The translations under genes and the position numbers were made by a program. Below the pieces are notes generated by a model. That model was not told the DNA's origin. It saw only the letters and a program-made list of their open reading frames with translations, and made no database searches. From Pelomyxa schiedti (taxonomy: Eukaryota > Protista > Evosea): a DNA stretch of 64,000 bases. Location of the stretch: assembly GCA_020536535.1 (NCBI GenBank), contig JAHLWZ010000792.1:124001-188000 (forward strand). The letters run 5' to 3'. Positions 10,879 through 49,483 of this stretch are shown piece after piece; position 1 is the stretch's first letter; every line of letters starts with the position of its first letter.

Positions 10879-13081
10879 ATGTCAGCTGCCACAGCCCAAC
10901 CCAACAAGACACCAACACCAAGAAAAAATACACCAAGAGAGGAGCCCAAAGCCCAAAAACCAGCAACACCGCTGGACTCCCACCGCCAATCCAAGGACAA
11001 AACAACCCCAACCCAGCCGCCCCATAATGCCGCCGCACCCGACGTCGTGCCGCACCCCGACGTAGCCGACAAATCCAACGCACGCTACGACGCCAAGGGT
11101 GCAGCCGACAACGACGCCGAGGGCGAAGAGATCGACCGCGACGACGAGGGAAACGGCGGCGATGGTGACGACGACAACGAGGACGACGACGAGGAGGAGG
11201 GCGACGAGGACGACGAAGACGATGAGGATGACGAGGACGGGGGGCAGAATGATGGAGATGAAGACCGCGACCGAGACCACGACGACGGCGACGAGCAGCG
11301 CCAGATGGAGCGCGCGCTGGCTTATCTGCAGGCGGTGGGCGGAGGAGCAGCAGTTATGGGACAACTGCAGAGCGTGTATGACCACATGGCCGATGTCGTG
11401 ACGGCGTTGTTAGAAAGGAGGCCCAGGGATGCTTATGACACTTTCGAGGCAATATCTTATCAGGTCAAGGCTGATTCTGCAAAGGTGGATTGCCCACCTA
11501 ATAGAACAGTGCAGGTGAGATTCTTCTACTTTTTTTTTCTTTCTTTGTGTGTTTTGTGTACCGGCTCTTGATCTTCAAAAAACCACGCTTTTTATTCTTA
11601 ACTGGGAATGCCAAAAAGGAGTTACCAGAACCCTCAGTAGATATTGGTACTGGCCTTATACATAAGAAGTTGTTTCAGGTTGGAAACTTCAACAGATTAT
11701 CATGTCACTAAATGGCATCTTTCCCTCTAATTCACTCAAAAGTAGACCTACCTTGCACAAGAGGAAGAGCCAGAGGATCCTGCTGCCCACACCGCCACAG
11801 CTGTGACACACGCTCCATCACTCAACTTTCCAAATTTACTGGAGGATTCATTCCTGTTAGACTATATGGGGATAGGACTTCATCAAGAAGATACAGTTAG
11901 GTCGGAGTTTCTTGCTTTTAATGATTCACCAACAATCAATAAGATTACAATTCTCCATGAAGCAATTGGCAGAAAGCCATTCTTTTGTGTATATGAGGTT
12001 CTGGGGAAAGATCTTTGGAACTGTTGCAGATTATTACATATGTGAAACACATAAAATAAAAAATGCTGCAGGTCTACTTCTTAGATAGCGATCGTTATTA
12101 AACCTTCACCTAGATGAAGAAAAAGCAGATGGGACCCTGGAATCAAAATATGGAATCAATCAATTCACATATTGGTATTGCACAACAGGTCTTTCCCGTT
12201 GCCCCTTTTCCTGTTTAGCTGAGTCTATTATGTCAATTAGCTGGGGCTCCCTGGGTGAAATTACCCCGCGTCTCACCCCAACAAATCACAGCTGCTAGAA
12301 GACTTCATCGAATATTTACTGGTATTCCTGAATCCCAGGTACATAAAATAAAACACCAAAACCATCTCATGCCCAGATAGATCAACACCAATGCGACTTT
12401 TCTGGGGTCTGAAATAGATTTCCTTCGAGCCCAAATTGCACGAATTACGGCATCCACCTCCATCAGTCCAAAAGGTTATTACCACGGTATAGGGCAACGT
12501 GAGCAAGGTGTGATGAACGGTTTACAAAAAACTGCAAGAGTTCCACTCAACTATATGGCAGATACGAGTTTTGTAAGCCTGCCAAAGAATGTCCTCCTAC
12601 AACCACAAAATTGGTTTCACCACACCACAGACATCAAAGCAGATGGGAAATGTTTCCCCAATGTGAGTTTGTTCTCTCTTCACAAACACCAAACACATTT
12701 TAGATATCCGAAATTCCAAGTGGGCCAGAACGGTCAATTGCCACTGATGAAGGTTTTTCTAGAATTCAAATACAAATTTCACATCTCATAACGAAATGCA
12801 GCACTTGGAACTACTCCTGCATGGACATTAAAATCACCACAATCAGCATGGCCAAGTCCAGTATTTCTTATTTCCAATCACTGGCCAGGGGCATATGCTG
12901 TTTCTCATGGAAACAAACTCGTCAATATGTATTTTGGGTACGTTTTTTTGCATTTTCTTTCAACTGTGTATTTACTCTTGAAAGTTTTGGAAATAAGAAA
13001 CTGAACATGGTATATGATGAAGAAATCGAAAAGAAATCATGCCACTTAAACTCTATTAGGCCCCTCTGGATGACATTCTAA
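10879..13081 (+). CDS. Radial spoke head protein RSPH4/RSPH6 family
   Basis: SVYDHMADVVTALLERRP; MGIGL; RFWGKIFGTVADYYICE; WVKLPRVSPQQITAAR; SEIDFLRAQIARITASTSISPKGYY; SNHWPGAYA. Acidic N-terminal tract. 3' end approximate. Confidence 0.88.
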
Positions 13082-13846
13082 CACTGAACAATGTTGTCAC
13101 ATTTGTGACCCATCATGAGCAGCGCCTTCGAAGCAGGCCAGTTATTTTACACAGGGATCCAACTTTGGGCTATTATGTGTGCACACACTCATCCACTTCA
13201 AAAGTGCGACAACTAGAGGAGAACTCTTGTGTCTCTATATTGGCCAGCAAGAAGGGCACATTGACAGGGGATTGTGTTCAGGTTGAACCCTCACAAAGAG
13301 CTCTCTTTTGTGATCTAACCCGGCGATAAGGTTGAAGCCACTGTTCAGAGCACAACTGAAAAAAAGATAAAGGAAAAAGCTTGGAAGAACCACAATACTC
13401 AGGTTCACAAACCATTTCCTCCCAATTGTAGACCGTGACAGACACAAACACAGGCACCTTATTCATTCATTGGACCATCTGACCCTTCCTTCCTTGTGCT
13501 TCTTGTTCGACCCACTACAATCGCTGTCAACCCTGGCCAGGTTTAACCTCAAACTTTGATTTCCTTCCATGCCTTTTTTTTGCTGGTACAAGGAATTTCA
13601 ACAAATTTCATTGTTTGAAGGGATTTTTTTTCTTTGTTTATTGTGGGAAGAGTGACTAATGCCACACTTCATGAGGATAAAGTTGTAAAGTTGTGCTCAG
13701 CTGTGACAGCAAGCAAAAGTCGAAGTAAAGGAGGGCACATCATACACCAACCTGCAACAAAGCTATGGGTGACAAATTGGCAAGCACGGACTTGAGAAGC
13801 TCTCGCAGAGCCTTTACATCTGCACAAGCCGGCGAAAAAAAAACAT

Positions 13847-14188
13847 GAAGAAGTGGCTGGAGCACGGAGCTGGGTGTCGTGACGTGGCGCATTGTGACCG
13901 CAGACACATGTTGAGTATGTTGGCACCAACACCGGTGATGCCGGATATGCGACAGTCTTGAGGAGGCNNNNNNNNNNNNNNNNNNNNNNNNNNNNNNNNN
14001 NNNNNNNNNNNNNNNNNNNNNNNNNNNNNNNNNNNNNNNNNNNNNNNNNNNNNNNNNNNNNNNNNNNGAAGAAGTGGCTGGAGCACGGAGCTGGGTGTCG
14101 TGACGTGGCGCATTGTGACCGCAGACACATGTTGAGTATGTTGGCACCAACACCGGTGATGCCGGATATGCGACAGTCTTGAGGAGGC
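13847..14188. other. Scaffold gap (100 N) with a 121-bp identical overlap on both sides
   Basis: 13847-13967 is identical to 14068-14188 across the Ns. Confidence 0.9.
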
Positions 14189-14336
14189 TCCTTCTAGGAA
14201 TAATCAAAGGGATTGAGGCCTCATCACTCCCAAATCACTCCCAAAACGCTCCCACAAGACCTTTTGGGTGAAAACAGCACTGATTAATAGTGAGAACAGG
14301 ACAGGAGGTTCCCAGAGGTGAACTGGTCCCTTTGCA

Positions 14337-14518
14337 AGGCTTGCAGCTGTTGCCTTCAGTGCTTCGGTATCGTCACTGTTGCTATACACGTCTTCATTAC
14401 CCTAGTAATCAGAATTACTACTTTGATGGGTGTTAAAAGTAATAATTCTGATTACTAGGGTCACCAAGATGTGCAACGGTGATGATACCGAAGCACTGAA
14501 GGCAACAGCTGCAAGCCT
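14337..14518 (+). ncRNA. Long fold-back hairpin; candidate pre-miRNA/hairpin RNA (alternative: palindromic MITE remnant)
   Basis: The 46-nt outer arms are complementary except for two G-U pairs on the + strand. Inner stem ccctagtaatcagaatta / taattctgattactaggg, with a short loop. Confidence 0.5.
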
Positions 14519-15858
14519 GTTTTCCCCATGCTCTTAAGTACCATTTCACCAGTAAGTGTGTAATAAGCCACAGTTTTGGTTTATTCTCTCACTGTAAAAC
14601 GATAAGTGCAAGAACAAAACGGGAACGAACATACAATGGATTTTGAACAGTTGATCCCTTTGGTTCAGTTGTTTGTTTGTTGTTAGTCAAAGGGAAAAAG
14701 TTGTGTTAGTTTGCCTTTCCCTGGAGCATAAAGGCCAAGTGATCTCTTTCTGCTTGCATTTATTGTTGCTCAATTTCATTTCATCTCATAAAAATGGGAA
14801 AGCACTTTAGGAAGGGATGTGATCTGAGAGCTGGCTAGGTCTGTGTGAGAAGAAGAGACACGTTCAAGTTACAGTGGTAACAAGTCATAGCCGAAAAAAG
14901 TGAAATGAGAGCAAAAAAAAACAAAAAGCAAACAAGTCTTGTATTATGGTAAGACGCATTCCAAGAGTTGCAAAGAGGAATTGCACTTCCACTTGCAGTC
15001 TTCATGGGCTTCTGAAGGCCTCTCATCGATGTGACTGAAGTAACCTAAAGAAGGGTTTGGAGACAATGTTAGTTTCACTTCACTGTGTTGATTCCATGTA
15101 CCTTCGCCACATGCCTTTGAGACTGCAACATCACCTATTGCTGCAAACCTGGCGAGCACAACTCCCTTCTTTAGGAGTGCAATTTCTGTTGGTGACTTCC
15201 AGTTCTCTTCTGCAAAGATTGAAGTAAAGCTTTGGTGAAGAAAGATTGTTTCAAAGTTCCATCCTCCAAAAGAATTGTGTATGAGTTTCCTGAGCCACGT
15301 GCTTGCTCCTTTACTAAAGTCAGGACAAAATCAAACAAAATGCTGGACAGTGTTTGACTTCGAATCCTGTATTTGCACTAGCTGGGCTCCCGGAGTAGGG
15401 TGGTATGGAAGCCACCAATTGGTGGTGGAGGTCCCCAGTGCACAAACATATTGAGCAGGCCAACACCTCCCAGAACAGCGGTGATTCCATGCATACATCA
15501 GGGATAAGCCGTCCCATAGAAAATGTGCCAGTAACTGTATAAACTTCTCTGTTGCTGGAGCATCAATAAGCATAACCAATGCCTCCTCTCCCTAAAGGCT
15601 TTCAAGGTCAGGGGAAAAGAAAAACAGAAAGGAAATCTAGAAGTAAGAGACAAAGTCACTACCTTGTAATCGAAACCAAGAAATTTCACTGCAGATCATA
15701 AAGAGAAAACTCAACAACTATTTACCAATGGAGATCAAGGACAATTGAGTGCAACAACGTACGGTGGGGATAATCACATACTCACAAGCATTTCTCATTG
15801 GCTCTGGTGCCGTTGCATGGTGATGTTAAAGAACCCAGGGTGAAGGAGGACAGTGCCC

Positions 15859-16115
15859 AGGTAAATCCCCCTCTCCATATTGTTAGCTTCTGTGGGCTCG
15901 AGAATAAGCCCCACAGAGGAAGAAGTGGCAATTTCTTGGCCACCACTTAGGCTCAGGAGTGTATGTTCTGTCTTCTCTGTTTTTATTTTTCGATTTCCAG
16001 CAGTTTGGCCACTAGTGGCTTCTTCTTTCTTCTTTTTCTCATTTCACCTGAGAATAGGTGGTGGATTTTCCACTTACAGTGTAACATCACCAAGGTAAAT
16101 CCCCCTCTCCATATT
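15859..16115. repeat. 23-bp direct repeat aggtaaatccccctctccatatt (15859-15881, 16093-16115) in a degenerate region
   Basis: Identical copies read directly; the surrounding minus-strand ORFs are broken. Confidence 0.7.
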
Positions 16116-17156
16116 CATCACCCCACTCAAACATAATAGGTAACCCAGACTGACAGGCAGGTCCAGGAGAATACATGTGGCTTTGCTCCACTTTCTCAGG
16201 TTCATTTACACCCTCAATCTTACCTCACCTCCAAGGTTGGCTGAATAAAAAAAACAGCAGACCACCAATCCTGAGTGACGGAAACAAAAATGAAATTGGG
16301 GTCAAACCAACTCTACCCAAAAAACACAAAAAAATTCTGGATCCGGTCTGGATGGTGTCAAAATCGTTTCGAACCAGGGGGAGAAGGTAGTACACAGCTG
16401 TGAGCAGGAGGCACTGGGACTGAGGAAACCCAAAAAGTGGTGGTAACTGGAGGGGTGCTGGAAAAAAAAAGTACAATTTTCTGGCACCCGGACCAGATTG
16501 TATCATTCTCCTAAATTGATTAAAAAAAAACCTGTTTGATTGTGGGCAAACTGTTGTGGTATGTGGTAGTGCATAAGAAGTTGTGGTGTGATGGTTTTGA
16601 GGTCTAACACACATCCACAGTCACCATGTCCCAAAATATGACATTGGCTCCACATTTCATAACCTTTGACACCCCAAATCCTCCTCCACCAAGGCTTTTG
16701 TTTCTTTCTGCTGAACCAAGTGAATGGTGACAGCACAAATGGGAAAAGCTAGCCTAAGGGTGCCTTGGATATCCTTGGAATGAGGGGCTATCTCATCCAG
16801 GGTGGTTACACTGATGGACAAAAGGAAGGAAGCTTGATTCCTTTGCAGTGGATCTTCTTAGCAGAAAAAAAAGCTGGTGTGTACAACAACCAGCTTCACA
16901 AGTGGCACCCATTCCCAAGGAGACTGCCACAGCACCTCAGCCAAAACGACCCCGAAAGCGTTAAAACCTTGGCTCCAGACCACATGTGGGTAACAGATTT
17001 CGCAGAATGGTACAATCTTGTCGCATCGTTGTGTCAAAAACCAAGAAATTGGAGTTATTTGACCCCCAGAAATGAGTCAAGGTGACAGAAACTGTTTCAT
17101 TTGTGGCACACGAATACTAAAAACGGATGGTTTCTTTTTAGCTGAACGAACTGATC

Positions 17157-18191
17157 ATGCCAAAAAGCAAGGAGAAGACTCCGGCCGCGTGCTGTACGCC
17201 ATCTACTACAAACAAACTACGTGGCAATGGAGCTCAAAAACTAAAGGACAACAAACGACAGCCTCCAACTTCCACAACCCAACAACGCTCACCACACACA
17301 GACACAACGAAATTCACAGGCACCTCTGCCGCCACCAAGTCTAACAACACCACAACGACCACGTCCTCTACCACCACACCCACACACGGCGCACCCAAGG
17401 CATCATCCTCAACAGCAACAACAACATCGTCATCATCGTCATCAACAACAACAACAGCCACACCCGCCGCGCCGCCACCAGCAACAACGAAAGAAACCGC
17501 AGCGGCCACGACGATGACGACGACGCCCACGGCGACGCCGCTGCACACGCGCATGATCGACGGCAACATGGAGGTGGCGCTGTACAACGAGCAGAGGGGG
17601 GGGTGGCCCCGGACCGGCAAGCACGTCGTCGCGCACTACACCGACGACGCCGTCGTCGTGTACCAGGCGTACAACCGCGACATCGCGGCGTACGCGGCGG
17701 CCAACGGCAGGTTCCTCGGCGCCCCCGGGTGGAGCGACTCGCGCACGACGTGGGTCAAGCCCAACTTCCTGTGGATGATGCACCGCAGCGCGTGGGGCAC
17801 CAAGCACAACCAGCAGGCCGTCGTCGCGATCTGGCTGCGGCGCCAGGCGTTCAACAGGCTGCTGGGCCACGCCCGGATTGTGGGAGAGTTCCACGAGAGC
17901 AACGCCGAGCGCGAGGTCGTCAGGCTGCAGTGGGACCCCGACTACGCGCCGTCGTCGTCCAGCAAGCACCACCTGCACTCGGTGAGGCGCGACATCCAGC
18001 TGGGCCTCAAGAAGGTCTCGGGGTTCGCTTCTGGCGAGGACATTGTCCGAATCGTGGACCTGAGTGACTTTGTGGCTGAGCAGAGGGCCAACATGCAGAA
18101 GTCTGAGGCTCTGCTTGAAATGCCAGTCGAGAGGGTGTACCCTGTGAGCCGCGAAATAGCTTCCGTATTGGCAATGGGCTCTGATGATTGA
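17157..18191 (+). CDS. DUF4291 family protein, intronless, with a Thr/Ser-rich N-terminal extension
   Basis: VVVYQAYNRDIA, RTTWVKPNFLWMMHRSAWGTK, VRLQWDPD and RRDIQLGL are DUF4291 signature blocks. Confidence 0.88.
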   Translation: MPKSKEKTPAACCTPSTTNKLRGNGAQKLKDNKRQPPTSTTQQRSPHTDTTKFTGTSAATKSNNTTTTTSSTTTPTHGAPKASSSTATTTSSSSSSTTTTATPAAPPPATTKETAAATTMTTTPTATPLHTRMIDGNMEVALYNEQRGGWPRTGKHVVAHYTDDAVVVYQAYNRDIAAYAAANGRFLGAPGWSDSRTTWVKPNFLWMMHRSAWGTKHNQQAVVAIWLRRQAFNRLLGHARIVGEFHESNAEREVVRLQWDPDYAPSSSSKHHLHSVRRDIQLGLKKVSGFASGEDIVRIVDLSDFVAEQRANMQKSEALLEMPVERVYPVSREIASVLAMGSDD

Positions 18192-18274
18192 AGTTCCAAA
18201 AACGATTAAGCCGTTATCCCTCCTGGGTACCCAGCAAAAGAAAGTTTTAACAGGGAACAAGAAAATGGTTTTAT

Positions 18275-19443
18275 TTAGTCTTGCTTTTTCCCTCTCTTTT
18301 TGTTGTTTTTGCGTTTTGTGAGGCTGCTTGTGGTTGTTGGGGTTGCAGCAGGTGTTGGTGATGTAGTTGTTGTGGTTGTGGAGGCCTTCTTGGCCTTCTT
18401 CTTACCACGGCTTTTCTTGGGTTTGGTTTCCTTTTCTTCTTCCTCCTCTGGCTCTGGCTCTGGCTCTTCCTCTTCCTCTTCCGGTTCCGGTTCCGGCTCC
18501 GGCTCCTCTTTCTCTTCTTCCTCCTCCGCTTCGGCTTTTTCCTCCTCTTCCTCTTCCTTCTCTTCCTCCTTTTCTTCCTCTGCTTCCTTCTCTTCTTCCT
18601 CTTCCTCCTTTTTCTCAGTTTCTTCCTCTACTTCTTTTTCCTCCTTTGTTTTGTCTTCAGTCTCTTCTTCAGAGGAAGATTCATAGCTGTCATCAGAATT
18701 TGATGTTGCTTCGACCGCAGGTGTAACTGGTGCAGCAGGAGTTGCAGCAGGAGTTGCTGGTGCAGCGGCCGAGCCTCTGAATTAAAGTCAGATTACTTGA
18801 TTAATAGGGTTGCATACAGCCCAAGAAGCTTCATGAGAGCATTCTCAGGGACTGGGAATGGTCGTGGATAAGTCCAGCCCAAAATGTGTGATTGAACAAG
18901 CTTGTTTGTGGCCAGTTTCAAGGGTACAAACAATGTCTGACTGACAAAAATCGTATTGATGTGCCACTTGAGACTCACAAAAAGCATGACTGGAGTCATG
19001 AGAACAAATTCTTTCACGGAACGCATGAGTTCGCCTGAGTCATAAGCCTCAACCGTAGTTTTTGTTTGTTGACCACTGCGTGAAAGAAATTCACGTAAGT
19101 AAAATACGAGAGCCGGTTTCTTGTACGTTAGCATGCCAAGTGAGTCTTTGCCAGGAACAACAACCTCAGTTTTGTCCGCCTTGCGGTGTATAAGGCAGTA
19201 CACAACACCAAAAACGATCATATTTAGAATTTGCATTGCTCCATATGCCTTCACGGATCTTGAGAAGAAAGCACAGTAAAACAGTGGAAAATACGTACAC
19301 ATCGTAGGTAGAACAACCGGACGGGATCGGTCCAGTCGAGTCGACTAGCGTAAGTGCGTAAGTCGTAATTCGTTGTGCATAAGATCCGCAGGAACTTACT
19401 TTAGAAGCAAAATGAGGGGCAACCCCAATAAAACCGGATCCAT
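18275..19443 (-). CDS. Pho88/SND3 family ER membrane protein with a long Glu/Lys-rich C-terminal tail
   Basis: RLDWTDP; TM helix; TTVEAYDSGELMRSVK..MLFVSLKWHI..QTLFVPLKLATNKLVQSHILG..PRPF. The last exon is Glu/Lys-rich with EPEPEP repeats. Confidence 0.8.
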
Positions 19444-19727
19444 GGCGACGTGTCGGCGGTAATGTCTCGCGAATAAAAGAGCAAAAAAGAGCACAATCAA
19501 TCTCTCAACAGTATAAAAAGCAATTGAGATAATTGAGATCAGACATTCAAGGTGACTCACCCGCCGAGGCTGAACGACGCCTGAGGTGCCAAAAAACTTC
19601 TACTTGGTCCAATTGGTGGGCAAATTTTCAAAGACGGCACTTCCCTGCAGATATCTGATCGACGTCGTTCAGAAAAAGCAAGGAAACGAAACGAAGATCC
19701 GGCTACACAGAAAAAGAAAACAAAACG

Positions 19728-22700
19728 ATGAGGAGTGTTGTTGTGTACCAAGCCAGGCTTACGTTGGTGTTGTGTCTGTTGTTGTCGTTGGGGTCATGCA
19801 CACTACCGTCTGTTGTGACCAAATCACACCCGCGATGTATATACACGCAAGCCCTCATGGATCAACTCCAGGTACGAAACGATGAGGGGAAACACCTCGC
19901 GAGAATCGCTTTCTGAGATCTTGACCGTGGGTTCTTGCAGGTTTTAGTAACCGCAGAGGAGGGCACTTGGTACAACTACTTGTATTCGTGGATGGTGAGG
20001 CACGCTTCTGACAACGCCGGCTGGGTAACTGGATACTTACCCATCGTTCTCTATCAAGCGACAGAGGACACTACTTTGCACGCCCCCTATCCAATTCCTC
20101 ATTAAACTGACTGTTATTTAGCGCCGACGATGCCCTTGCGTTGCTCGAATCGCAGTTTTTGCACACAACTCAGAGTGATTGGGGTGGGGACTACTGCCGA
20201 AGATGGCCTACTCGTGTTGCAATGATTTATGACTGGGTTTATGACTATGCAAATTCTACAACGAAGGCGAAGATTATCTCTAAAGGCAACGAATTTTTGA
20301 CCTACATGATGGAGACCAACGCAGATGGGACTTCAAAACATCTCAGCAATAGTGACACTGATGAGGTTGCTTGCTTCACTTTTTTCCTGTTTTTTACCAA
20401 AAAAAAAAAAAAGATATTGGGGTACTATTCAGGGGCAATGTTGTGGTACATTGTCACTGCAGACGAAAACCCAACGGCAATTACAATTGCCAATACTGCT
20501 TGGCTTGGGGGTGTCTCTGCAAGTGGGGGCAGTTACGATACTACTGTTAGGAATGAAATCTTCCAGCTAATTACAGTTGATGCAGCCGGAGGTACTATAT
20601 TCTTTCTCCTCACATGCAATGACTTGATTGTTAGGATCATGGCCCGAAGGTACCTACTACAATCCAGGAACAATGGGTATATGGGCTCTTCAGTACCAGG
20701 CTATGAAAACTGGATTTGGGCATGATTACTTCAGCGAATCTCCTAAATTGTTTAGTGAGCTTGGCCTTCATTGGATTCATTTAACTACACCAGATATTGG
20801 AAGGTAAAGTTGTTTCCTTGAAGCTCCTAACTTTATAGTTTATATCGCTGGGGAGATGAGGGATATGGAGAGGATGCTAGAGATTTTGCAACACGTTCAC
20901 GGGACCCTGTTTCCATTTCATGGATCATGTCCTCAATGGCTGATGACTACACAGTATTCTCATTCAAATTCTAAGATTATTTCCCGAAAAGCGCAACACA
21001 GGTGCAATGCCAGTGTTGGTCATACTTGCAAGCACTTCTAGATCTCTATGCATATACAATGGTGCCCGCAGATGAAGTGTTTTTCTTTTTCATATCTTCC
21101 CATGACTCTGAAGACTTCCGGCAACTTCCAATGGGAACCTGCTCCATTTCATCTACAACCTCTATTCCGGCTTCATCTGGAATATGTCTCTACCGTAGTG
21201 GGTGGACGGCAAATGATTCCCTAATTGGGATCGAATTCCCAAGGTGGGTTTGGCTCGATCACATGACATCTTATCATGGAAATTTTCAGTTATATAGAAA
21301 AGGCAAACAATATCAATAAAGCTGATTCTCATGCTCCGTAGGGGAATGGGTCTTTACCCATCCAGGATCATATGGAGAGCCCACAACTTCGGGAACAGGC
21401 GGTTCCAACACTATGATATTAAATGGATTCCCTATGTATAGGGATGGCAGTAACATTACCCCCGAAATGTGGCACTCCCATGGTACAGTTTGCACTGCTT
21501 CTCTTCTTCTAACATGAGTCTAGAATATAAACCTGGAGCATTCGACTATGAGTTCGGGGAAAACTATGTTTTCATATCTGGAAATGCTGCAGGGGCATGG
21601 AATTACAACGGCTCCTGGTACCCTCAATATTGAAGAAGGCATTAGAATTCATTCTTTTTAGGTATGTGCCACCTTCAAGCCAGCACGAACATACCCGATC
21701 AATCTTGTACTTGTCCTCCCAAGGAAATACGCATGATACGATTATATTGTGTGACAGGCTTTACGTGCTTGATCCAAGACAATTGGATAAGTGGGACGAG
21801 CCATATTACTACACTGATGGTGAAAAAACCCAGATCGAGGATGCCGAACACCGAAAGGCTAGTATCCATGAATTCTAGACTATCTGACTGCGTTTAGATG
21901 TGGTATTTCCACATGCTGACAGTGCCTGAAGTCTCTGGTTCTCAACTGACTTTTGACACTGCTGGGGGACAACACGCTAAATTGCAGACGATCACGCCCA
22001 CAATTACAATTTCTGATGTAGTTGATGAGCATGACATTTGGCCTTCCGATGAATATTATATACCTGACACAGAGAGAATGTATCACGTGGTAATCTCCCC
22101 CTCTGTTGATAGAGACTGGGATGTGATGTTGCACGTCATGCATGCATGGGATAACGAAGACCCACTTTCAATTGGAAGCACTGTTTTTACAAACAGTTCT
22201 ACTGGCGTCTTACTACACAGAACGGGGGAGGAAGACTGTGTTGTTGTATTCAACGCTGAAAAAGGATCCATTTTGCCTTCTCCAGGTGATCCGATTGGAT
22301 ACTGGGACCCTGAAGTCCAGGTAATGGCCCCACAGTCACATTTATTCGATGCAGCAACTGTGATTTCCTTCAAAGTAAGAGTCTCTTGGATTTATTTAAT
22401 TCTAAGAGACCCAAAGGCATGGATACAGACTGCATCCTTAACAATGTACATATCAGACCTGGATCCACTTATTGATTGGGAATTGCGAATTGATGGGGAG
22501 TTGTACTATTCCCTTGATCCAAACGCGGCAGGATTCTACAGAAGAGAGATTCCAGATGTTGGGGAAGGCTCACATATTTTCGATATCTATGACGGTAAGC
22601 CGCACTCGAATTTCTTTCAAGTGGTTCATCTGCATTTCAGGCAGCGAAACAGAGCCACCTTACACGGAATCCGACTTCCCGTCCGAAGAACCTCCCTCCC

Positions 22701-31419: not shown

Positions 31420-34388
<2,969 letters not shown>

Positions 34389-40059: not shown

Positions 40060-40207
40060 CGTGTCGGGAAAAAAATAGTGAGATCTCACTGGATCTCGGC
40101 TGCACCTTTTTAGCCGAACAGAAGAATTAATTGACAGGTGTCAGATGCCAACGCGAAAAAGAAAAAGTCTCGGCCGTACGAAGCAGAAAAACAAAAAAAA
40201 AAGAGAG

Positions 40208-43200
40208 ATGGCCGACGTAAGTCGCAACAGCGGGGGTGCCAGTTCCAGCGGAAGTGCGAGTCAGCAACAACACGGATCTCCCGTTCCTTTGTGGCAGTCG
40301 TACGTGCGGTTGCAGGCGAGAAACGCGCAACTTGAGAAGGAGGTCACTACGCTGCGCGACGCTCTCAAGCAACTCACGAGCAAGTTTTTGGCGTACCTTA
40401 AGAATCCCGCGTCTGTGCCAGATGCGGCGCAGGCGATCGCCGCCGCCAACGCGGTGGCTGGCGCGCCGTCTCCAAGCGCTCCTTCGGTCACTTCCTCCAG
40501 CGGGCCTACGAAGGAAGGTAAGAAAGTAAGAAAACTACCTACACCCCCTGTGAGCTCCCAGCAGCAATCAGCTTCACGGGTGCTACCTCAACCACAACCA
40601 CGGCCTCTGCCACAGCCGCAGTCGCAGTCACAGTCACAAACACAACCACAACCACAAGCGCAACCACAAACACAAACACTTACACAACCACAAGCGCAAA
40701 CACTTACACAAGCACAAGCTCAGACCCAAGCACAAGCGCAAACGCAAACACAAAACCTGCAACAAAGTACGCAAATACCAGCCACTTCACAAGAACAGAC
40801 TCCTCTTCCGGCACAATCAGAACCTCAAATGCAGACACAGTCACCTCCTCGAATTAAAGACTCAGAAAAGCCCCAGAACAACATAAAACAAGAGGAAACA
40901 AAAGATGTAAAAACCAAGAGCCAGTCAAGTCTGGTTGGAGTGTCTTCCCCAGACTCTACGCAAGTGAAAGAAGATAAGCCTCAAGAAAATTCATATTCTT
41001 TGTGCTCAGATTCAGTTCAACTGGCAGCTGCTTCTCAGTCACAGCAAGACAAATCTCAAGTTTTGGTTCCACAGCCATCACAGGAACTCAACCATGTGGA
41101 AACAGAAAACGTTGCAATGCCAGTCTCAGATCCGGAGACTTTGGAAGCATTTGAGAAACTCACACTTCTCATAGAGACTATCCATATTCAAGACTCCAAG
41201 CCAAACATGGAGAAACCAACAGCCCCTCCATGCAAGCTACCATCGCGAGTAATGCATTCTCGCTGCCGTGCTGTGAAAAGAAAACCAATACCCATCATCT
41301 CAAATCATCTGGCTATTTCACCTCGGACACCAAACTTCTTTACATTTGATTTTTTGTTTCACTGGCAAGAGATTGAGCTTAAACTCCTTGTATTTGTCCA
41401 GCAACTAGACGCTTTACTTGAAGAATACTTAGTCCAATCCCCATCCCTCCAAGAACAGCCCTTGGATGGAATGCCTAGTCACACAAGCCAAGTATTTCCC
41501 TTCAAAAAACCTCATTGAGAGTCACTCTTAAGAAGGATGAGCCATTGTCTTCCAATATAAGACCGTATTCTGTAGATGCCCCAGAAAGACCACTGTCTGG
41601 GACGGTAGTAAAAGAACGAGCACTTTCGGCATCAGAAACGTTGTCCCTTAAGATATCCGATATAGATGGTTTGTCAGTTTGAGTAGCTTTATTTAACAGT
41701 ACCTAGTATCTGCACAACCTGCTGTGTCACCCAGTCCTGAACCAAGGTGTGATTACCTTTCTTTCATATTGAACTATAGCTGCCCTTAGAAAGTGGTATT
41801 TCCCATCAAAGCATTCCTATGGCTGCGCTGCACCTGCTCCCGTTGATAGCAATGTCAGTATATGTCTGATTCCTCCTTCAGATTTGAAGCCAACTCTGGA
41901 AAGTAAAACTGCTTGCTTGTAATCGTCCCACCATGTTCAATAATTCACCCAGAGTTCACTCAGCGGTTTCCCACATCAGCAACGCTTGGGGATCTTATTA
42001 AGGCAGCCTGGGATAATTGGGCAATTAGTATGAAATACAAGTCTGCTGAGGAACAATTCACACAAGTATCTGTAACTGCTTATAAATTACCAAATAACAA
42101 AAAAAAAAAAAAAAAAAAGATTCTTATGGATTACGATTTTGCCATCATCAGAGCACTTTGCACCACTTCAAGTCTTGAAGACCAAGAAAGAGTGGCCAAC
42201 CTTGTTATTCCGTTTTTTGATTCCATCAATCCTATTGAGACCCAAAAAATGCTACACATTGTCATCGATTCTGAAGTAAAGACTTCTGGTTGGCATTCCA
42301 AAATTTTGGCCTCCTAATATTGGCAGTAAATACAAGCGATTTACTAAGAAGCAATGGACCTCTACCGAGATTATTGGTCACCTTTACACAGCTTAAGATG
42401 AAAGCCTTTGTGAAATCGACCATTATTCCCCTTTTAAATAGATGGAATGCCCTTGAGCCTCCTCCTTCATATGAGGTAGTGGGGTTGTTTGTTTAAGACT
42501 TGATAGAATTAAAACTCGTCCCCTGCAGCTTGACCCAAAGAACCTTCCCACTCCCGAAATTCCTGACCTTGTGAAAACAAATGCACAGCTAAATACTAAC
42601 AGGACAAACCTGCAACTTATAACCAAGGAATTTATTGGTCTTCTTACCAGTGAAGTAAATTCCATTCCAAGGTATAATTTATTATTAATACCCAATTACG
42701 GTATTCAACATATGAAGTGAGGTGAGAACTGTTCTTTCACACTTGTGGCATGTTGCTTTTGAAAAATTTGGTAAGACTGCCTACTTAGCTGTAGGCGCAT
42801 TTATCTTTGAGCGAGTTCTCTGCTCTCCAATAGGGAACCCTGAAAAGTACAACATACATGATGGTACAAAACAAAACAAATTTTTTTTACCTATCCTAGT
42901 TACTTTTATGTAGGAACTCTCCGGAGAGGACTGATGCTATTTTTGAAAGTAGCTCATGCCCTTGCATACCAGGAGCCTTTCCATGACGGATTCATGTGCT
43001 GCATGAATGCTTTTATATTAACAAACGTAGACAGCGTCTCAAATTTAATCCGCTTGATTGTGGTGTGTCATATCCACATTAATTCCTAGTCCAACTGCTA
43101 CTTCAGGATGTTGTCTCCACACTTCCCAAGCAACCAAGTTCTGTTGTTTCCCCCTCCAAGGATTCGGACATGATCCTCCTTCAACTTCATTCTCTTTGTA

Positions 43201-46200
43201 AAATCAACTTTGATAAGATTTCTTCATCTCTTTCCGCAATGCAGGAACTATATGTAATTATCTCCAAAAGGAAAAACTTTCACTCAACAGAACAAAACAA
43301 CAAGTCTATAGCCAATCCAGTATTGTGCCGTCTTCAGAAAGTGCTAGTGTCACCTCCTCACATTAAATTTGAATATCCAGTGAAAGTTTGTGCCACTGAT
43401 TCGTACTTTGAGATAAGCTCCTGGAACATCCAATTGTTTTCTTCCGCCCTTCGAAAACATGTTTTAAACTATGGATAGAGAGAATTTGCCGTATGTTAAT
43501 ATATGCAGACGATCCTCACAAATCCCCACTTTCGAGTTTGTTTCAAGAAAAGTGGAAACTGAGGTTTAATACTTCCTCTCACTATGTCATCTGATATTCT
43601 GTAGGAAAAGCAAGTTTGTTCAGAGATTGCAAGTATCCTAGAATGCCCTCAAGATTGGAATTTTCTTGATGAAGAGCTTTTTCAGTGGGAGACGACACTG
43701 TATCGGTAAAATGATGAGCTTCTCATGTAGAACATAATTTAAGCAAGGAGTCTAGTAGAAGTGCAGCGCCCATGGCCCAGCATCCATGCCCGCTTCACAA
43801 TGTTACCACTACCTCCAAATACGCCCACGATGTTATATGCCACTATATACCTTCCTAGTGGCTCAACTACAAAAACTTTCCAATGCTCTGTTGATGTTAC
43901 TTCTACTGACTTACTCGCTGAGGTAATCATAGCATCATCTTCACAGTGGCATTTACTCTCTCTAGGTTATTCAAAAAACAAAAGGACTCCATTCTCTCAC
44001 AGCACGGTCGGCCGTGTTTAAGACAGTTGGCCAACAGCAGTACCTTTTTGACAACATGCCATTGAAGTACTTTGATTTTGTGAGGGACTCTCTTAGACGT
44101 GGTAAGCGAGTCGCTTTCGAACTGTTGTCTACTTCTGGTATCTTGTGGGAATCGCCAGTGAAAGTATATTGAAAATTTATTATCCACTCTTATGTCTCTC
44201 ATACAGATTACCTTCCCTGCACCACCAGTCTTTCCTGCTAGTATGTCTGCCCTTGATGTGCCAAGACCCCTGGAGGTTCAAATCAATTATGTTGTGGGTC
44301 TGCCCCCTGCTCCTCCTGATTCATATGTTGGCGTTGAAGCTGGATTGTACATTCCTCACACAATTGACTTGGAAATCCATTACTAATTTTTTCCCAGATA
44401 CTATGGTGGAAAATTGTTTTCTGAACTCTTTTGTTGTTCTCTTATTGAAATTAACAACAAGACAGTCTGGAACCAGTGGTTGTCATTTGCTGGTTCAAAC
44501 CTTTCAAAACTTCCCAAAGTAAGCTTGTCACATACGAAGTCGAGCTAAAAATTTGTAGGAAACAAGAATCTGCTTCAGTGTATTTATTCAAGAAATCAAG
44601 AATTGGAAGACACGCAGTCAAACAAATGGGAATCGCACTCCAGGTGCATCAAATGGGAATGGAACTTCTTCACCAATCGGATCACCAGATGTCAGGTTTT
44701 GTCTTGTGTTGCCCTCTAATCATTTCATGACTCTTGCCCCAGGCCAAGAAGTGGGACTCTAGCCTTGTACCGTGCTCAAGCTCAAATTCAGACTGCAACT
44801 TTTGGGAAGAGGACAGATTTATTTTGGTCAAGTGTGAGGGTTGGTTTCCAGAACAAGGGATCAAAAGTGATTATTTCTTCCAGATATATAATTTCTGTTC
44901 CCACTTGCGATCAGGGCAAATTACCCTTCCACTGCTTCCTGGAGAAGTTAACCCCATTGGTTTAGCTTATTGTATTCATTTTTCTCTTACACTAAGAGGT
45001 GCTCAGGAATGGCTGTTGACAGTATGAATCTATCCACAGAAGATTCTGTTGGGGAACTGTGCATAACTTTTCCAGCTGGGGCCTCCATAATGTTTCCTTC
45101 TGACGAGCAATTACTTTCCACAGCTTCAACAAAGTCCACAAGGAACTCCGTGGAAGAAGATAAACCAGTCCCATCAGCTGAGGATCAAGCAACATTACTT
45201 GCTCTGTTACAGAGTGGTAAGCTGCCCATAAATCCTCAAGTTATGACCTTCCTAGATCTTCTTTATCCAATGTCAAGTGAAGAAAAGGCGTTCATTTGGA
45301 AGTACAGACATTTTTGTTTATCGGTACAAAATGGTAGTTGTCTCACTTTTCCCCTTGAAAATCAACAATACAAAGGATTTGTTAAAATACCACTGGCAGT
45401 GAATTGGACAGACACTTCTGCTGTCCTGGAGCTCTACAAGTATTCTTCGTTATGTTACAGTCGAACTCATGAACTTGCAGGTTAATGCCCACTGAGGCTT
45501 CACTGGATCCTATGGTCGCAATGGAAGTGCGTTAATTTCTTTTTTTCTATTACCAGTGTCTAAAAAGCCAACGCAACAGCTTTTGGACTCCAAATTCGTT
45601 GACCATAAAATTCGGTCCTATGCAGTAAGCTGTTTGAATCAACTATCATTGGAGGAGTTGTCAGATTTTCTCATCCAACTTGTTCAAGTATTTTCTTTTG
45701 GACTCAAACATTGCTAAGTAGCAAAAAAAAAAAAAAAAAAGGCACTAAAATGTGAATCTTACCAAGACTCCCCTCTTGCCCAATTTCTTCTCTCTCGGGC
45801 CATTGAGAACAGAGTTCAAATAGGACATTTATTCTTTTGGCTTTTGAAGGTAATTTCCTTTTCCTATGTCATTTCCAACCTCGTTTTATAGAGTGAGTCT
45901 GATCAACCAAAAGTATCTTGATACCACTTACTTCACTGTCTTTCAAAAAGTACCTTACTCCTGCTACAGGTGAGGGAGCGCTTTCGTATTTTAATGAAGT
46001 ACTATTTGAGGTTTACACAATTCAATTTGGTGCCAGCTGAAAAAAAGAAAACAGGGGATGTGGGGAGCACAGACATATTTTAAGGAAGCAACAGCTTCTT
46101 ATTCAAAAATTCATGAGTATCACAACCAACCCTAAAGTACACTCTTTTTGCCCCTATTTCATTTCTTCACATTTTGATAGGTACGACAGTCTCGGACACT

Positions 46201-47580
46201 TTTTGAATCCGAACTGGTTTCTTTGCCAATAGAAAACGGTCTTCCCCTTCCTCATGATCCATGGTACGCCTCTTCTTCTCAACCATAGTTGAACGAATGC
46301 CACTTTTAGCCTTTGTGTTCGCCGACTCATGCCAGAGAAATGCAGAGTTCTAGACTCCCTTCGAGTACTGAATTAGATTTTAATTCATCTAACAATGTGT
46401 AGGCCCCTCTATGGCTAGTTTTCGAAAATGAGGATATCCTTGGGGATCCCATTTACGCACTGTTCAAAGCAGATGACGATCTTAGACAGGATATGCTATC
46501 ATTGCAAATTATAACAATAATGAATAAAGTACATTTGGGAAATTTAAATTATCTCCAACCTCACTCCCACTCAGGTATGGCAACGGGAAAATCTCGATTT
46601 GAATCTGACACCATACACATGCCTTGCCTTGGGCCCTGGCAAAGGAATGATAGAAATCGTATTAGACTCCCAAACAATCGCAAACATTCAGAAGGTGTCT
46701 CCTCCACCTTTTTTTTTGAGAACTTAACAGGCTTTGGCGAAGGTATTTGGTGGTGGTATTACATCAGCTTTCAAAGACAGACCACTGGCAACCTGGTTGC
46801 GCGAGCATAACCCCAATGGTTTGCCTGCCAAATCTAGATGTTCCATTCAAAATGAATTAGATGCTGATTACAACAATGCTGTGGACAACTTCATTCGGTC
46901 ATGTGCTGGCTATTGTGTTGCAACTTATGTATGCCTGTGCTGTAGGGTTTAAAAAATAAATGTCAAATACAGGTACTGGGTGTTGGTGACAGGCACAATG
47001 ACAATATTTTGCTTACCAAAAATGGATATCTGTTCCGTGTGTTCCCTTCTGAATTAATAGTGCCCTTATCCTGTTAGACATCGATTTTGGTCATATTCTT
47101 GGAAACGTGGAAAAATTTCACGGCTTTAGTAGAGACAGGGCTCCATTTGTCCTGACACCTGGTATTTACCCACTTCGCATTGTGATGCTTATCACTTTGT
47201 ACTTTGTAGAGTACGTGTACGTAATGGGTGGAGAGAAAAATCCCAAGTGGCAAACGTTCATCTCTTTTTGCTGTGATGCTTACATTATACTACGGAGGCA
47301 TCACAGAACATTTATCAATTTATTTGCCATGGTAAAATGCCACTCACTTCTGTTACACTGACACATGAAACAGATGTTATCTACTGGAATGCCTGAATTA
47401 CGCACGGCTGAAGATATCCTGTACTTACGGGATGCATTTGGGCTCGACAAAACGGAAGCAGAAGCAAGGATTGCCTTTGAGAAGCTGGTGTACAGGAGTT
47501 TAGACACTCTAATGACACGCATCAATAACGCAATTCACATTGCCGCCCACCCAAAGGTTAGTGAGGTGGGCACATCATGA
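40208..47580 (+). CDS. Class I-like phosphoinositide 3-kinase (RBD-C2-helical-kinase) preceded by a RasGAP domain and a Gln/Pro-rich N-terminus
   Basis: Kinase: [25 protein letters not shown]|[40 protein letters not shown]. Helical: LVQ|ALKCE. C2: VWNQWL. RBD: KTVGQQQYL. RasGAP ~42120-43060: [33 protein letters not shown]. Confidence 0.88.
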
Positions 47581-47758: not shown

Positions 47759-49483
47759 TCAAAAATCGTCTTGCTCATATTGTTCATGGTCGGGGTTGTA
47801 GCCTTCACCATCCAGGTTGCTTTTGACATCATCGTCAGGGGGTGGGGATGTTGGTTCTCCTGATGGGCCTTTGCCTTTGCGAGGGGCTTTCTTCACTTTG
47901 GGTGGCTGTGGAGGGCGCTCCTCTGCAACGAGGCCGGCCTCTTCATAGCGGTGATTGAGTTCGTCTAGTGTTATAAACCTGGATGTGGGTTGTTGGGATT
48001 TTACGAGATTATTTCGGGCATTTTACCCAAGGGAAAATAGCTCTTCAAGGTGGTCCATTTCTTCTGTCATGTCTGAAGGGTTGACAGGAAGGGAGTGGGA
48101 AACTGGGAGTGCTGGCTCTGGATGGAAATAAACTTCCTGTTCAAAGGCACCCTAAAAGATTTTAAAGAAAAAAGGTAGGATAAACTGAATGACCTCCGGT
48201 ATTAGACATGATTCAATATCAGCTTCCTCAACCCCAAGCAACTGGGATAATGTGGAATTTGATATAGTCAATACTGACACTTCTGGAGAATCACTGGGAG
48301 GAGTAAATAAAATCCAATATCAATGAATAACGAAAGATGTCGCACCGGAAAGTGGTTTCTCCAGTTATGGTCTCCCACATGGCCTCTTCATCATAGTCTT
48401 CCGCAGGCACACTTTCGTGTGGAAGTGAAGAATACAGGAGAATTTCATCTTCAGTCGCTTTTCGTGGCTTTTCAATAACCTGAACATTTGTATTGTAAGG
48501 CAGGTGCTGGCTAGCCAAGGCTTACTTACACGGAAAGTCTTAAGATAAACCCAACATGGTCCCACAACAGTGCTAACTTCACCAGAAACTGTGTTGATGA
48601 ATTTGGCACAATCCCCTTCAACCACATGAACTTTATCCCGATAGACCTGTAGTTGGCAGTTATACAACTTACTCTTTAAATTAATGAGACACACAACAGA
48701 GCGGGCCTCTCTCGTCTGCTTATTTTTATGATGCTTCTTCCTGCGCAACCTTGGCATGGAATAGAATTGGTAATTTTCCATTTCAATTCGCTCCAAAGCT
48801 TCTCTTTCTCTTTGTTCCCGAAGCATTTTCCCCAACTGTACGCATAGCTCCTCAACTTCAGCCTATTTCTGGGTTAAAAAAAAAGAACAAACTAAACTTG
48901 GAGGAAAACGAACCTTGTTTTTGCGGAAAATATGATTCCACTTGCACACATGGGATGCCTTATATTCATCATCCAGCCTCTGAATCTCTTCCAACTCTTC
49001 TGGTGATGGTTTCTAGGGAAAAGATTAAGTTCCAGGTTACTGACAAGGTGCATACCGTAAGGAAAGAATGAACCCTGGGCCTCCGCTGCCGACCGGGCTC
49101 CGTGGCTCTTTTGCGAGGGCGGGGTGCTTTTGAATGATAAGGTACATCTTCCTTTGGAAGAGCAGCCTCTCTTCTCCAATCCGCGAGCTAATTCTCTTTG
49201 TAAGAGAAGCAACAATGAGTATAAAACTAACTGCTTTGGCCTCAGAAACTGTGAGTCTCATGTCATCAGCTGGGGCAGCCATTTCTTCTGAGTCCCTGGT
49301 AACTGGCAAACTTCTTTTATACATTTTTTCAATGAGTTTGTTTGGCTTGTGGGTGCCCTTGTACATGGCAGCTTGGTGGGCAGCACGCCTATTTGCCACA
49401 GTGTTGGATTTTATTTGTTCTCTAAAATTCACATACGCTTCTTCCTTTCGTTTCAAAATACGAGCGTAATCGTATTTCCACAT
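47759..49483 (-). CDS. Hypothetical multi-exon protein (charged helical N-terminus, Pro/acidic C-terminus)
   Basis: Chain of minus-strand open exons with GT-AG introns ending ...EQDDF*. No family recognised; start uncertain. Confidence 0.55.

Follow-up and report, generated by a model that had tools for sequence, protein, structure and literature searches.

We analysed a 64,000-nucleotide (nt) stretch of the genome of Pelomyxa schiedti (C792:124001–188000, hereafter the window), whose host contig belongs to an assembly of 52,367,397 bases in 5337 contigs, described as 52.4 Mb in 5337 scaffolds obtained from amplified single cells and carrying 7.43 introns per gene (PMC8887013). The + strand at window positions 40208–47580 contains a gene of approximately 39 exons whose product, of approximately 1,886 amino acids if translation starts at 40208, very probably joins a domain homologous to Ras GTPase-activating proteins (RasGAP) and a phosphoinositide 3-kinase (PI3K) in a single chain. 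From the N- to the C-terminus it comprises a coiled coil, a low-complexity region, the RasGAP-homology domain, a linker of approximately 170 amino acids, and RBD, C2, helical and kinase domains. The original prediction, made from the sequence, had described the RasGAP-like part as running without an intergenic gap into a complete PI3K, and this was borne out by one open spliced frame leading into a complete RBD-C2-helical-kinase unit, by RNA splicing on both sides of the junction and by the same layout in two diverged loci (A and B, see below). Exons were joined by a script as a frame check only, and all homology searches were run exon by exon. The features of the gene are as follows.

40208–41491, + strand: putative exon 1, with the ATG, a coiled coil at about 40289–40366 and then a long Q/T/P-rich low-complexity stretch; the frame is open over 40208–41515.
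41533–41668, 41707–41746, 41790–41902 and 41953–42065, + strand: four small putative upstream exons, on the shortest frame-keeping GT-AG path.
42120–42288, 42327–42475, 42529–42671, 42718–42863 and 42914–43059, + strand: RasGAP-homology domain in five exons, recognized by Pfam, same-genome comparison and PDB profiles, with two introns seen in RNA.
42347–42349, + strand: candidate arginine finger, the R of LLRSNG, which aligns with the R of LFRSN/LFRAN in same-genome RasGAPs.
42806–42814, + strand: FLR equivalent, F-E-R, which aligns with the FLR of p120GAP (GFVFLRLICP) and of neurofibromin.
42946–42948, + strand: helix lysine of K-x-x-Q-x-L-A-N (here LKVAHALAY), which aligns with the K of MSKILQSIAN in neurofibromin and of LLCKVLQNLAN in P0001.
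43060–43106, + strand: putative junction intron (47 nt, GT..AG, phase 0), frame-keeping, from the last RasGAP exon to the linker exon.
43107–43435, 43479–43563 and 43605–43705, + strand: linker of approximately 170 amino acids in three exons, all conserved in loci A and B, with two introns seen in RNA.
43748–43922 and 43966–44163, + strand: RBD, with a PF00794 match of 23.3 bits on the second exon (cut-off 22) and a weak collinear match on the first.
44207–45216, + strand: PI3K-type C2 region in six exons, between the RBD and the helical domain, with a weak PF00792 match (14.8 bits, positions 12–50, one exon).
45256–46364, + strand: helical (PIK) domain in ten exons, including one of 21 nt (45892–45912), with PF00613 matches of 48.1 and 37 bits on two exons.
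46403–47580, + strand: PI3/PI4-kinase domain in eight exons ending with the stop codon at 47578–47580, with PF00454 matching five exons, two of which exceed the cut-off individually.

Between 42120 and the stop codon the joined frame consists of 34 exons and 33 GT-AG introns (38–57 nt), giving 1324 codons in which the sole stop is the terminal one. Fifteen GT-AG introns (41–53 nt) were seen directly in RNA contigs from three single-cell RNA-seq runs, several more are backed by RNA contig pieces and loose ends, and the remainder are predicted. Those seen directly include two in the RasGAP part (42672–42717 and 42864–42913) and two in the linker (43436–43478 and 43564–43604). RNA cover was nested across the three runs, extending approximately 0.8, 2.9 and 4.9 kb upstream of the 3' end, a pattern that fits what is expected of one long oligo-dT-primed transcript.

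The case that the five exons at 42120–43059 encode a true but very divergent RasGAP homologue is solid at the level of sequence comparison. The motifs quoted in the original prediction all occur at the places given for them and in frame upstream of the RBD, C2, helical and kinase exons: DLLRSNG in exon 42327–42475, a 16-residue FLR-like stretch in exon 42718–42863, a 10-residue stretch in exon 42914–43059 and, further downstream, EIASIL in linker exon 43605–43705. The RasGAP model PF00616 matched consecutive exons collinearly over this interval (model positions 86–132 with 13.0 bits and E 0.097, and positions 135–186 with 16.9 bits and E 0.0059), each P. schiedti exon alone scoring below the curated cut-off of 28.3 bits. 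The same model gave 34.9 bits (E 1.9e-8) on an open 132-amino-acid piece of locus A, and 17.1 and 20.1 bits on exons of locus B. When searched against the whole genome, the FLR exon had as its sole non-self matches four exons that were also found by the Pfam RasGAP model. Collinear tblastn matches to five same-genome RasGAP loci were obtained with the FLR exon (E 1e-6 to 2e-5), the lysine exon (4e-5) and the finger exon (approximately 0.2). RasGAP clusters made up 29 of the 30 best matches of the FLR exon in a comparison of protein-language-model features (Atlas). p120GAP and neurofibromin were the only PDB proteins matched by exon profiles built from the three species; the lysine exon reached E 4.9e-6 with hhalign, and single-exon phmmer searches of PDB sequences returned noise only. 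The finger alignment is statistically weak (tblastn E 0.18–0.25; hhalign E 0.019, at the right place and with low probability), its position is collinear, and the equivalent exon of locus B matches PF00616 positions 17–56.

In the PI3K half, an RNA contig piece covers 43964–44098 in the second RBD exon, whose weak PDB matches were all to the RBD of p110gamma; the RBD exon of locus A scored 28.3 bits with PF00794, and the RBD exons are unique in the P. schiedti genome. The C2 region shares its exon order with loci A and B, and one of its introns (44696–44742) was seen in RNA. Four introns of the helical domain were also direct in RNA, with a fifth (45688–45741) predicted from contig pieces, as were six of the kinase domain. 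The kinase motifs are intact in the exon translations (the ATP-site lysine within a 10-residue motif, the GDRHNDN catalytic loop and DFG), and the stop codon directly follows the kinase domain, so that the protein ends without a C-terminal PX or C2 tail. While the PI3K is complete, as had been proposed, its assignment to class I did not hold as firmly: the best match of the last kinase exon was the class II enzyme PI3K-C2alpha (E 1.9e-7), followed by p110alpha (1.7e-4), while the RBD exon is nearest to p110gamma. The PI3K half is therefore best described as probably of class I/II type. None of the exons preceding the RBD gave a Pfam match to a p85-binding (adaptor-binding) domain.

A search with the last exon retrieved open reading frame fragments 86% and 76% identical to it; the contigs that carry them come from an uncultured sample and belong to ENA assembly ERZ21831265 and Logan runs ERR12015700 and ERR12015701. 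These define two further loci, A (contigs L011, L012 and L013) and B (contig L014), in which comparison with the exon peptides recovered, collinearly, the coiled coil, two small upstream exons, the RasGAP part, the three linker exons and the RBD, C2, helical and kinase domains. In locus A, the 132-amino-acid RasGAP piece mentioned above lies in an open reading frame 4.4 kb upstream of the kinase end that already carried a precomputed RasGAP match. Kinase exons were individually 77–95% identical to loci A and B. Pairwise identity between the three loci was 83–85% in the kinase, 59–64% in the RBD and 37–43% in the RasGAP part, and it is from this approximately equal distance between them that we take the RasGAP-PI3K layout, on sequence, to be old and maintained. 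Tiny introns and gene similarity suggest that loci A and B come from pelomyxid-type relatives.

Such a combination seems to be undescribed. Literature searches for a RasGAP-PI3K architecture found no such protein, which fits two surveys of amoebozoan enzymes and agrees with the remark in the original prediction that none was known. Amoebozoan class I and II PI3Ks were reported to have exactly four domains, RBD, C2, helical and kinase (PMC4617754), and the same four domains only were found in the PI3Ks of Entamoeba, with no p85 homologue or adaptor-binding domain in E. histolytica and the latter domain reported absent from both Entamoeba and Dictyostelium PI3Ks (PMC6563779). The adaptor-free class I enzymes (p110gamma, Dictyostelium PI3K1/2 and the six E. 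histolytica candidates) resemble the gene described here in their RBD-C2-helical-kinase order, catalytic motifs and lack of a p85-binding domain, but none has been reported with a RasGAP, whereas the P. schiedti protein has approximately 850 extra N-terminal residues that include the RasGAP homology. A GAP-homology domain is also physically tied to a PI3K catalytic subunit in class IA enzymes, through p85-type regulatory subunits, which carry a Rho-GAP domain (PMC4617754); p85, however, is a separate protein of RhoGAP fold attached via SH2/iSH2, whereas the tie in P. schiedti is covalent and of RasGAP type. The RasGAP domains of NF1 and p120GAP share with that of P. schiedti the finger arginine, the FLR arginine and the helix lysine, in the same order and spacing, but the latter is very divergent (13–17 bits per exon), has FER in place of FLR and HALAY in place of QNLAN, and lies on the chain of a Ras effector kinase. 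The plexin cytoplasmic region likewise holds a RasGAP fold and a ubiquitin-fold GTPase-binding domain in one chain; unlike the P. schiedti protein, it lacks a kinase, has a receptor ectodomain and carries its RBD inserted within the GAP domain.

The shaping of macropinocytic and phagocytic cups and the steering of migration depend, in amoebae and leukocytes, on an excitable circuit made up of Ras-GTP, PI3K and RasGAPs such as NF1; to our knowledge Ras, PI3K and RasGAP are separate proteins in every system described. In P. schiedti, binding of membrane Ras-GTP to the RBD would recruit the kinase or switch it on, while the GAP-homology domain on the same chain would bind this GTPase or another Ras-family member nearby. 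The P. schiedti copy would most likely speed GTP hydrolysis, because the finger arginine, the FLR arginine and the helix lysine are all kept in it. Each round of PI3K activation would then be self-limiting, with effector and off-switch in one molecule, as with PLC-beta and Gq. PLC-beta (for Gq) and p115-RhoGEF, through its RGS domain (for G13), are effectors that also act as GAPs of the GTPase activating them; they share the hypothetical logic of a GTPase-activated protein able to switch that GTPase off, giving fast, self-limited signalling, but work on heterotrimeric G proteins and have unrelated folds. We know of no Ras-family effector with its own GAP. The N-terminal extension may in addition take adaptor or localization roles in cis, since archamoebae lack p85-type adaptors. 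We consider the joint proposition, that this is one gene and that its RasGAP domain makes PI3K activation self-limiting, to be finely balanced. A bolder version can be offered only tentatively, and we doubt it somewhat: that this may be the first Ras-family effector with its own active GAP, a PI3K which in at least three pelomyxid-type lineages would hydrolyse the Ras-GTP that recruits it, producing self-timed PIP3 pulses, so that one polypeptide rather than separate NF1-type GAPs would set the size and lifetime of Ras/PIP3 patches.

Several observations weigh against an active GAP. The leucine of FLR is replaced by glutamate in P. schiedti, as had been pointed out in the original prediction, and catalytic positions vary over the three loci, the residues in P. 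schiedti, locus A and locus B being R, K and R at the finger, E, Q and L in the middle of FLR, and K, R and R at the helix position; the FLR arginine itself (42812–42814) does not vary among them. Sequence change is also much faster in the GAP part than in the kinase (approximately 40% against 84% identity). Judged from these alignments, the variable residues and fast evolution are no less compatible with a binding or regulatory function than with catalysis. Within the same layout, the domain could thus be a pseudo-GAP that binds Ras-GTP or another partner without hydrolysis, acting as a second Ras sensor (for avidity or coincidence detection) or as a regulatory or adaptor module in cis, in the manner of the BH/RhoGAP-like domain of p85 or of IQGAP-type domains. 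This would be a serious contender, although we lean away from it: the inconstancy of the catalytic residues, the fast evolution, a divergence too great for a genome-wide Pfam RasGAP scan to detect the domain, and the structural or interface-type nature of the residues that are invariant (G-x-F-x-F-x-R, P-E, LRRGL and D-x-F-M) all speak for it, but P. schiedti and locus B retain the FLR arginine and, within a canonical L-[LF]-R-x-[NE] sequence, the finger arginine, while inactive RasGAP-fold domains such as that of IQGAP lack the finger arginine.

With either an active or an inactive GAP domain, an off-switch fold welded to an effector kinase and kept through deep divergence offers a natural test of what such coupling does, whether as a self-limiting pulse, as Ras avidity or as regulation in cis. 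It also suggests how class I-type PI3Ks are controlled in lineages that have no p85 or p101 adaptors. The three natural variants (R/E/K in P. schiedti, K/Q/R in locus A and R/L/R in locus B) constitute a ready mutant series for biochemistry. If the protein does have an active GAP of its own, Ras/PIP3 patches, which are feeding-cup structures in amoebae, would be timed by one polypeptide.

The single-gene layout itself was weighed against two adjacent genes, a RasGAP-like one ending at 43087–43089, where the frame stops if the intron 43060–43106 is left unspliced, and a PI3K gene starting at the ATG at 43170. RNA over 43000–43500 is informative in part: the two linker introns on the 3' side were seen, but no RNA contig covers 43036–43300, so that the junction splice is unseen in RNA and relies on frame logic and the two relatives. 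This gap counts against a single gene, a frame-compatible GT-AG pair may arise by chance, and the spacers beside the gene are short (approximately 100–200 nt). We nevertheless consider two genes very unlikely. The methionine at 43170 is not conserved (leucine in locus A, serine in locus B), and a conserved linker motif, D-x-D-x-[IV]-L-x-x-L-H-x-x-C-K, runs across it. In both relatives, the interval from the preceding stop or acceptor to this motif is free of in-frame ATG codons, so that translation of the motif there requires splicing to an exon further upstream. The junction intron has a counterpart in locus A, a GT-AG intron of 42 nt in the same place and phase, after ...LI; in locus B, a single GT-AG solution, 40 nt long and lying slightly downstream, keeps the frame. 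In addition, nearby spacers have A/T runs that are missing from the 80 nt between 43089 and 43170, RasGAP and PI3K exons occur at similar depth in the same RNA run, and the adjacency is kept in three deeply diverged lineages. An assembly or reading artefact, such as a chimeric contig or mis-joined region, is hardly credible: although the assembly derives from amplified single cells (PMC8887013) and the related contig L011 looks chimeric with bacterial DNA further downstream, an 11.6-kb DNA contig spans the whole compared stretch without a difference and the same arrangement is found on three independent contigs of another sample.

A frameshift near 43150 had been suspected, an extra C in a run of four being thought necessary to avoid a TGA at 43170. 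The run (43150–43154) consists of five C, frame 0 is open over 43083–43475, and the supposed TGA is the ATG at 43170–43172 read one base out of frame, which rules out a frameshift or pseudogene at this point. The DNA run X4 showed no difference from the window, but it may be the window's own source. After the junction intron, the exon reads through a 38-residue stretch in frame 0. The idea that the start of this exon forms the C-terminal helix of the RasGAP fold gained no support (Atlas blank, no BLASTP match, Smith-Waterman z ≤1.2, hhalign probability 0.1). Linker exon 43107–43435 is unique in the P. schiedti genome. Its 43107–43433 portion had no match among 1.84 billion representatives, a result of little weight given that records of the organism's own genome are seemingly missing from some databases.

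At the N-terminus, a start at 40208 is likely on comparative grounds, because exon 41790–41902 is conserved but it and its open frame lack an ATG, and because locus A has the coiled coil and the end motif of exon 2 within one open exon; the start implied by the original prediction is thus plausible. The coiled-coil motif also precedes the RasGAP exons in both relatives (L013:58–135 in locus A and L014:3739–3819 in locus B), and the end motif of exon 41533–41668, DIDGLS, resembles DVDGLS in locus A. The proteins encoded by exons 41790–41902 and 41953–42065 are conserved in locus A and/or locus B, the former in both. Exon 1 had no RNA cover among the RNA contigs, which were compared from 41300 on, and exon 41707–41746 has no support beyond lying on a frame-keeping path. 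A total of 8424 open GT-AG paths lead from 40208 to 42120; an open path alone is no proof, and it is the comparison with loci A and B that supports the N-terminal part. The exact set of small exons between 41492 and 41790 given here is one candidate path.

The P. schiedti gene also shows some local peculiarities. The first 450 bases of exon 1 (40200–40650) have a G+C content of approximately 60%, compared with approximately 40% in the rest of the gene and its surroundings. Introns 42066–42119 and 45688–45741 contain runs of approximately 21 and 18 A just before the AG (42098–42118 and 45723–45740); the former is 54 nt long and stop-free, so that its retention would add 18 in-frame residues. 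The 38-nt intron 46365–46402, the removal of which is needed for the kinase frame, was retained in one RNA contig (X1 record 4, unbroken over 46309–46404), which fits nascent or partly spliced RNA in single-cell libraries.

Both halves of the protein have many relatives in the genome. Several dozen loci of the 52-Mb genome were matched by the Pfam RasGAP model at exon level, and the RasGAP repertoire is strongly expanded, with annotated members P0001 and P0003 (1642 and 1655 amino acids) and ENA/Logan relatives P0002 and P0004. Approximately ten further PI3K-type loci matched the last kinase exon at 31–59% identity (C526, C809, C373, C953, C518, C991, C628, C573/C1176/C2436 and C275), an expansion on a par with the six class I candidates in Entamoeba; the scores of C573, C1176 and C2436 were identical, and these three may represent copies of a single locus. 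No contig of the genome carried PF00616 and PF00454 matches closer than 15 kb that would indicate a second RasGAP-PI3K gene, and the closest PI3K paralogue (C526, approximately 50% identical) had no convincing RasGAP-like exons upstream. The gene described here is the sole RasGAP-PI3K gene detectable in P. schiedti.

The gene lies between a divergently transcribed gene that ends near 40089 and a convergent gene that starts near 47760. The neighbours of locus B are different, with no local synteny: tubulin-tyrosine-ligase-like and IFT46 genes (L014:353–3332) precede the gene, pointing to ciliary or flagellar genes in that organism. On L011 (ctg81888l of ERZ21831265, 454 kb), in the region 11700–20201, the locus A gene is followed approximately 1.5 kb on by plainly bacterial genes (sigma-70, peptide deformylase, PilZ and GHMP kinase), while the other two locus A contigs continue with eukaryotic genes (SURF6 and XPG); L011 thus has the look of a metagenomic chimera or of bacterial DNA beside amoeba DNA. 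Elsewhere in the window, 31420–34388 (+ strand) contains an elongation factor 2 gene, recognized from a 13-residue stretch and the AHVDHGKTT GTP-binding motif and including a 528-codon open stretch at 32162–33748.

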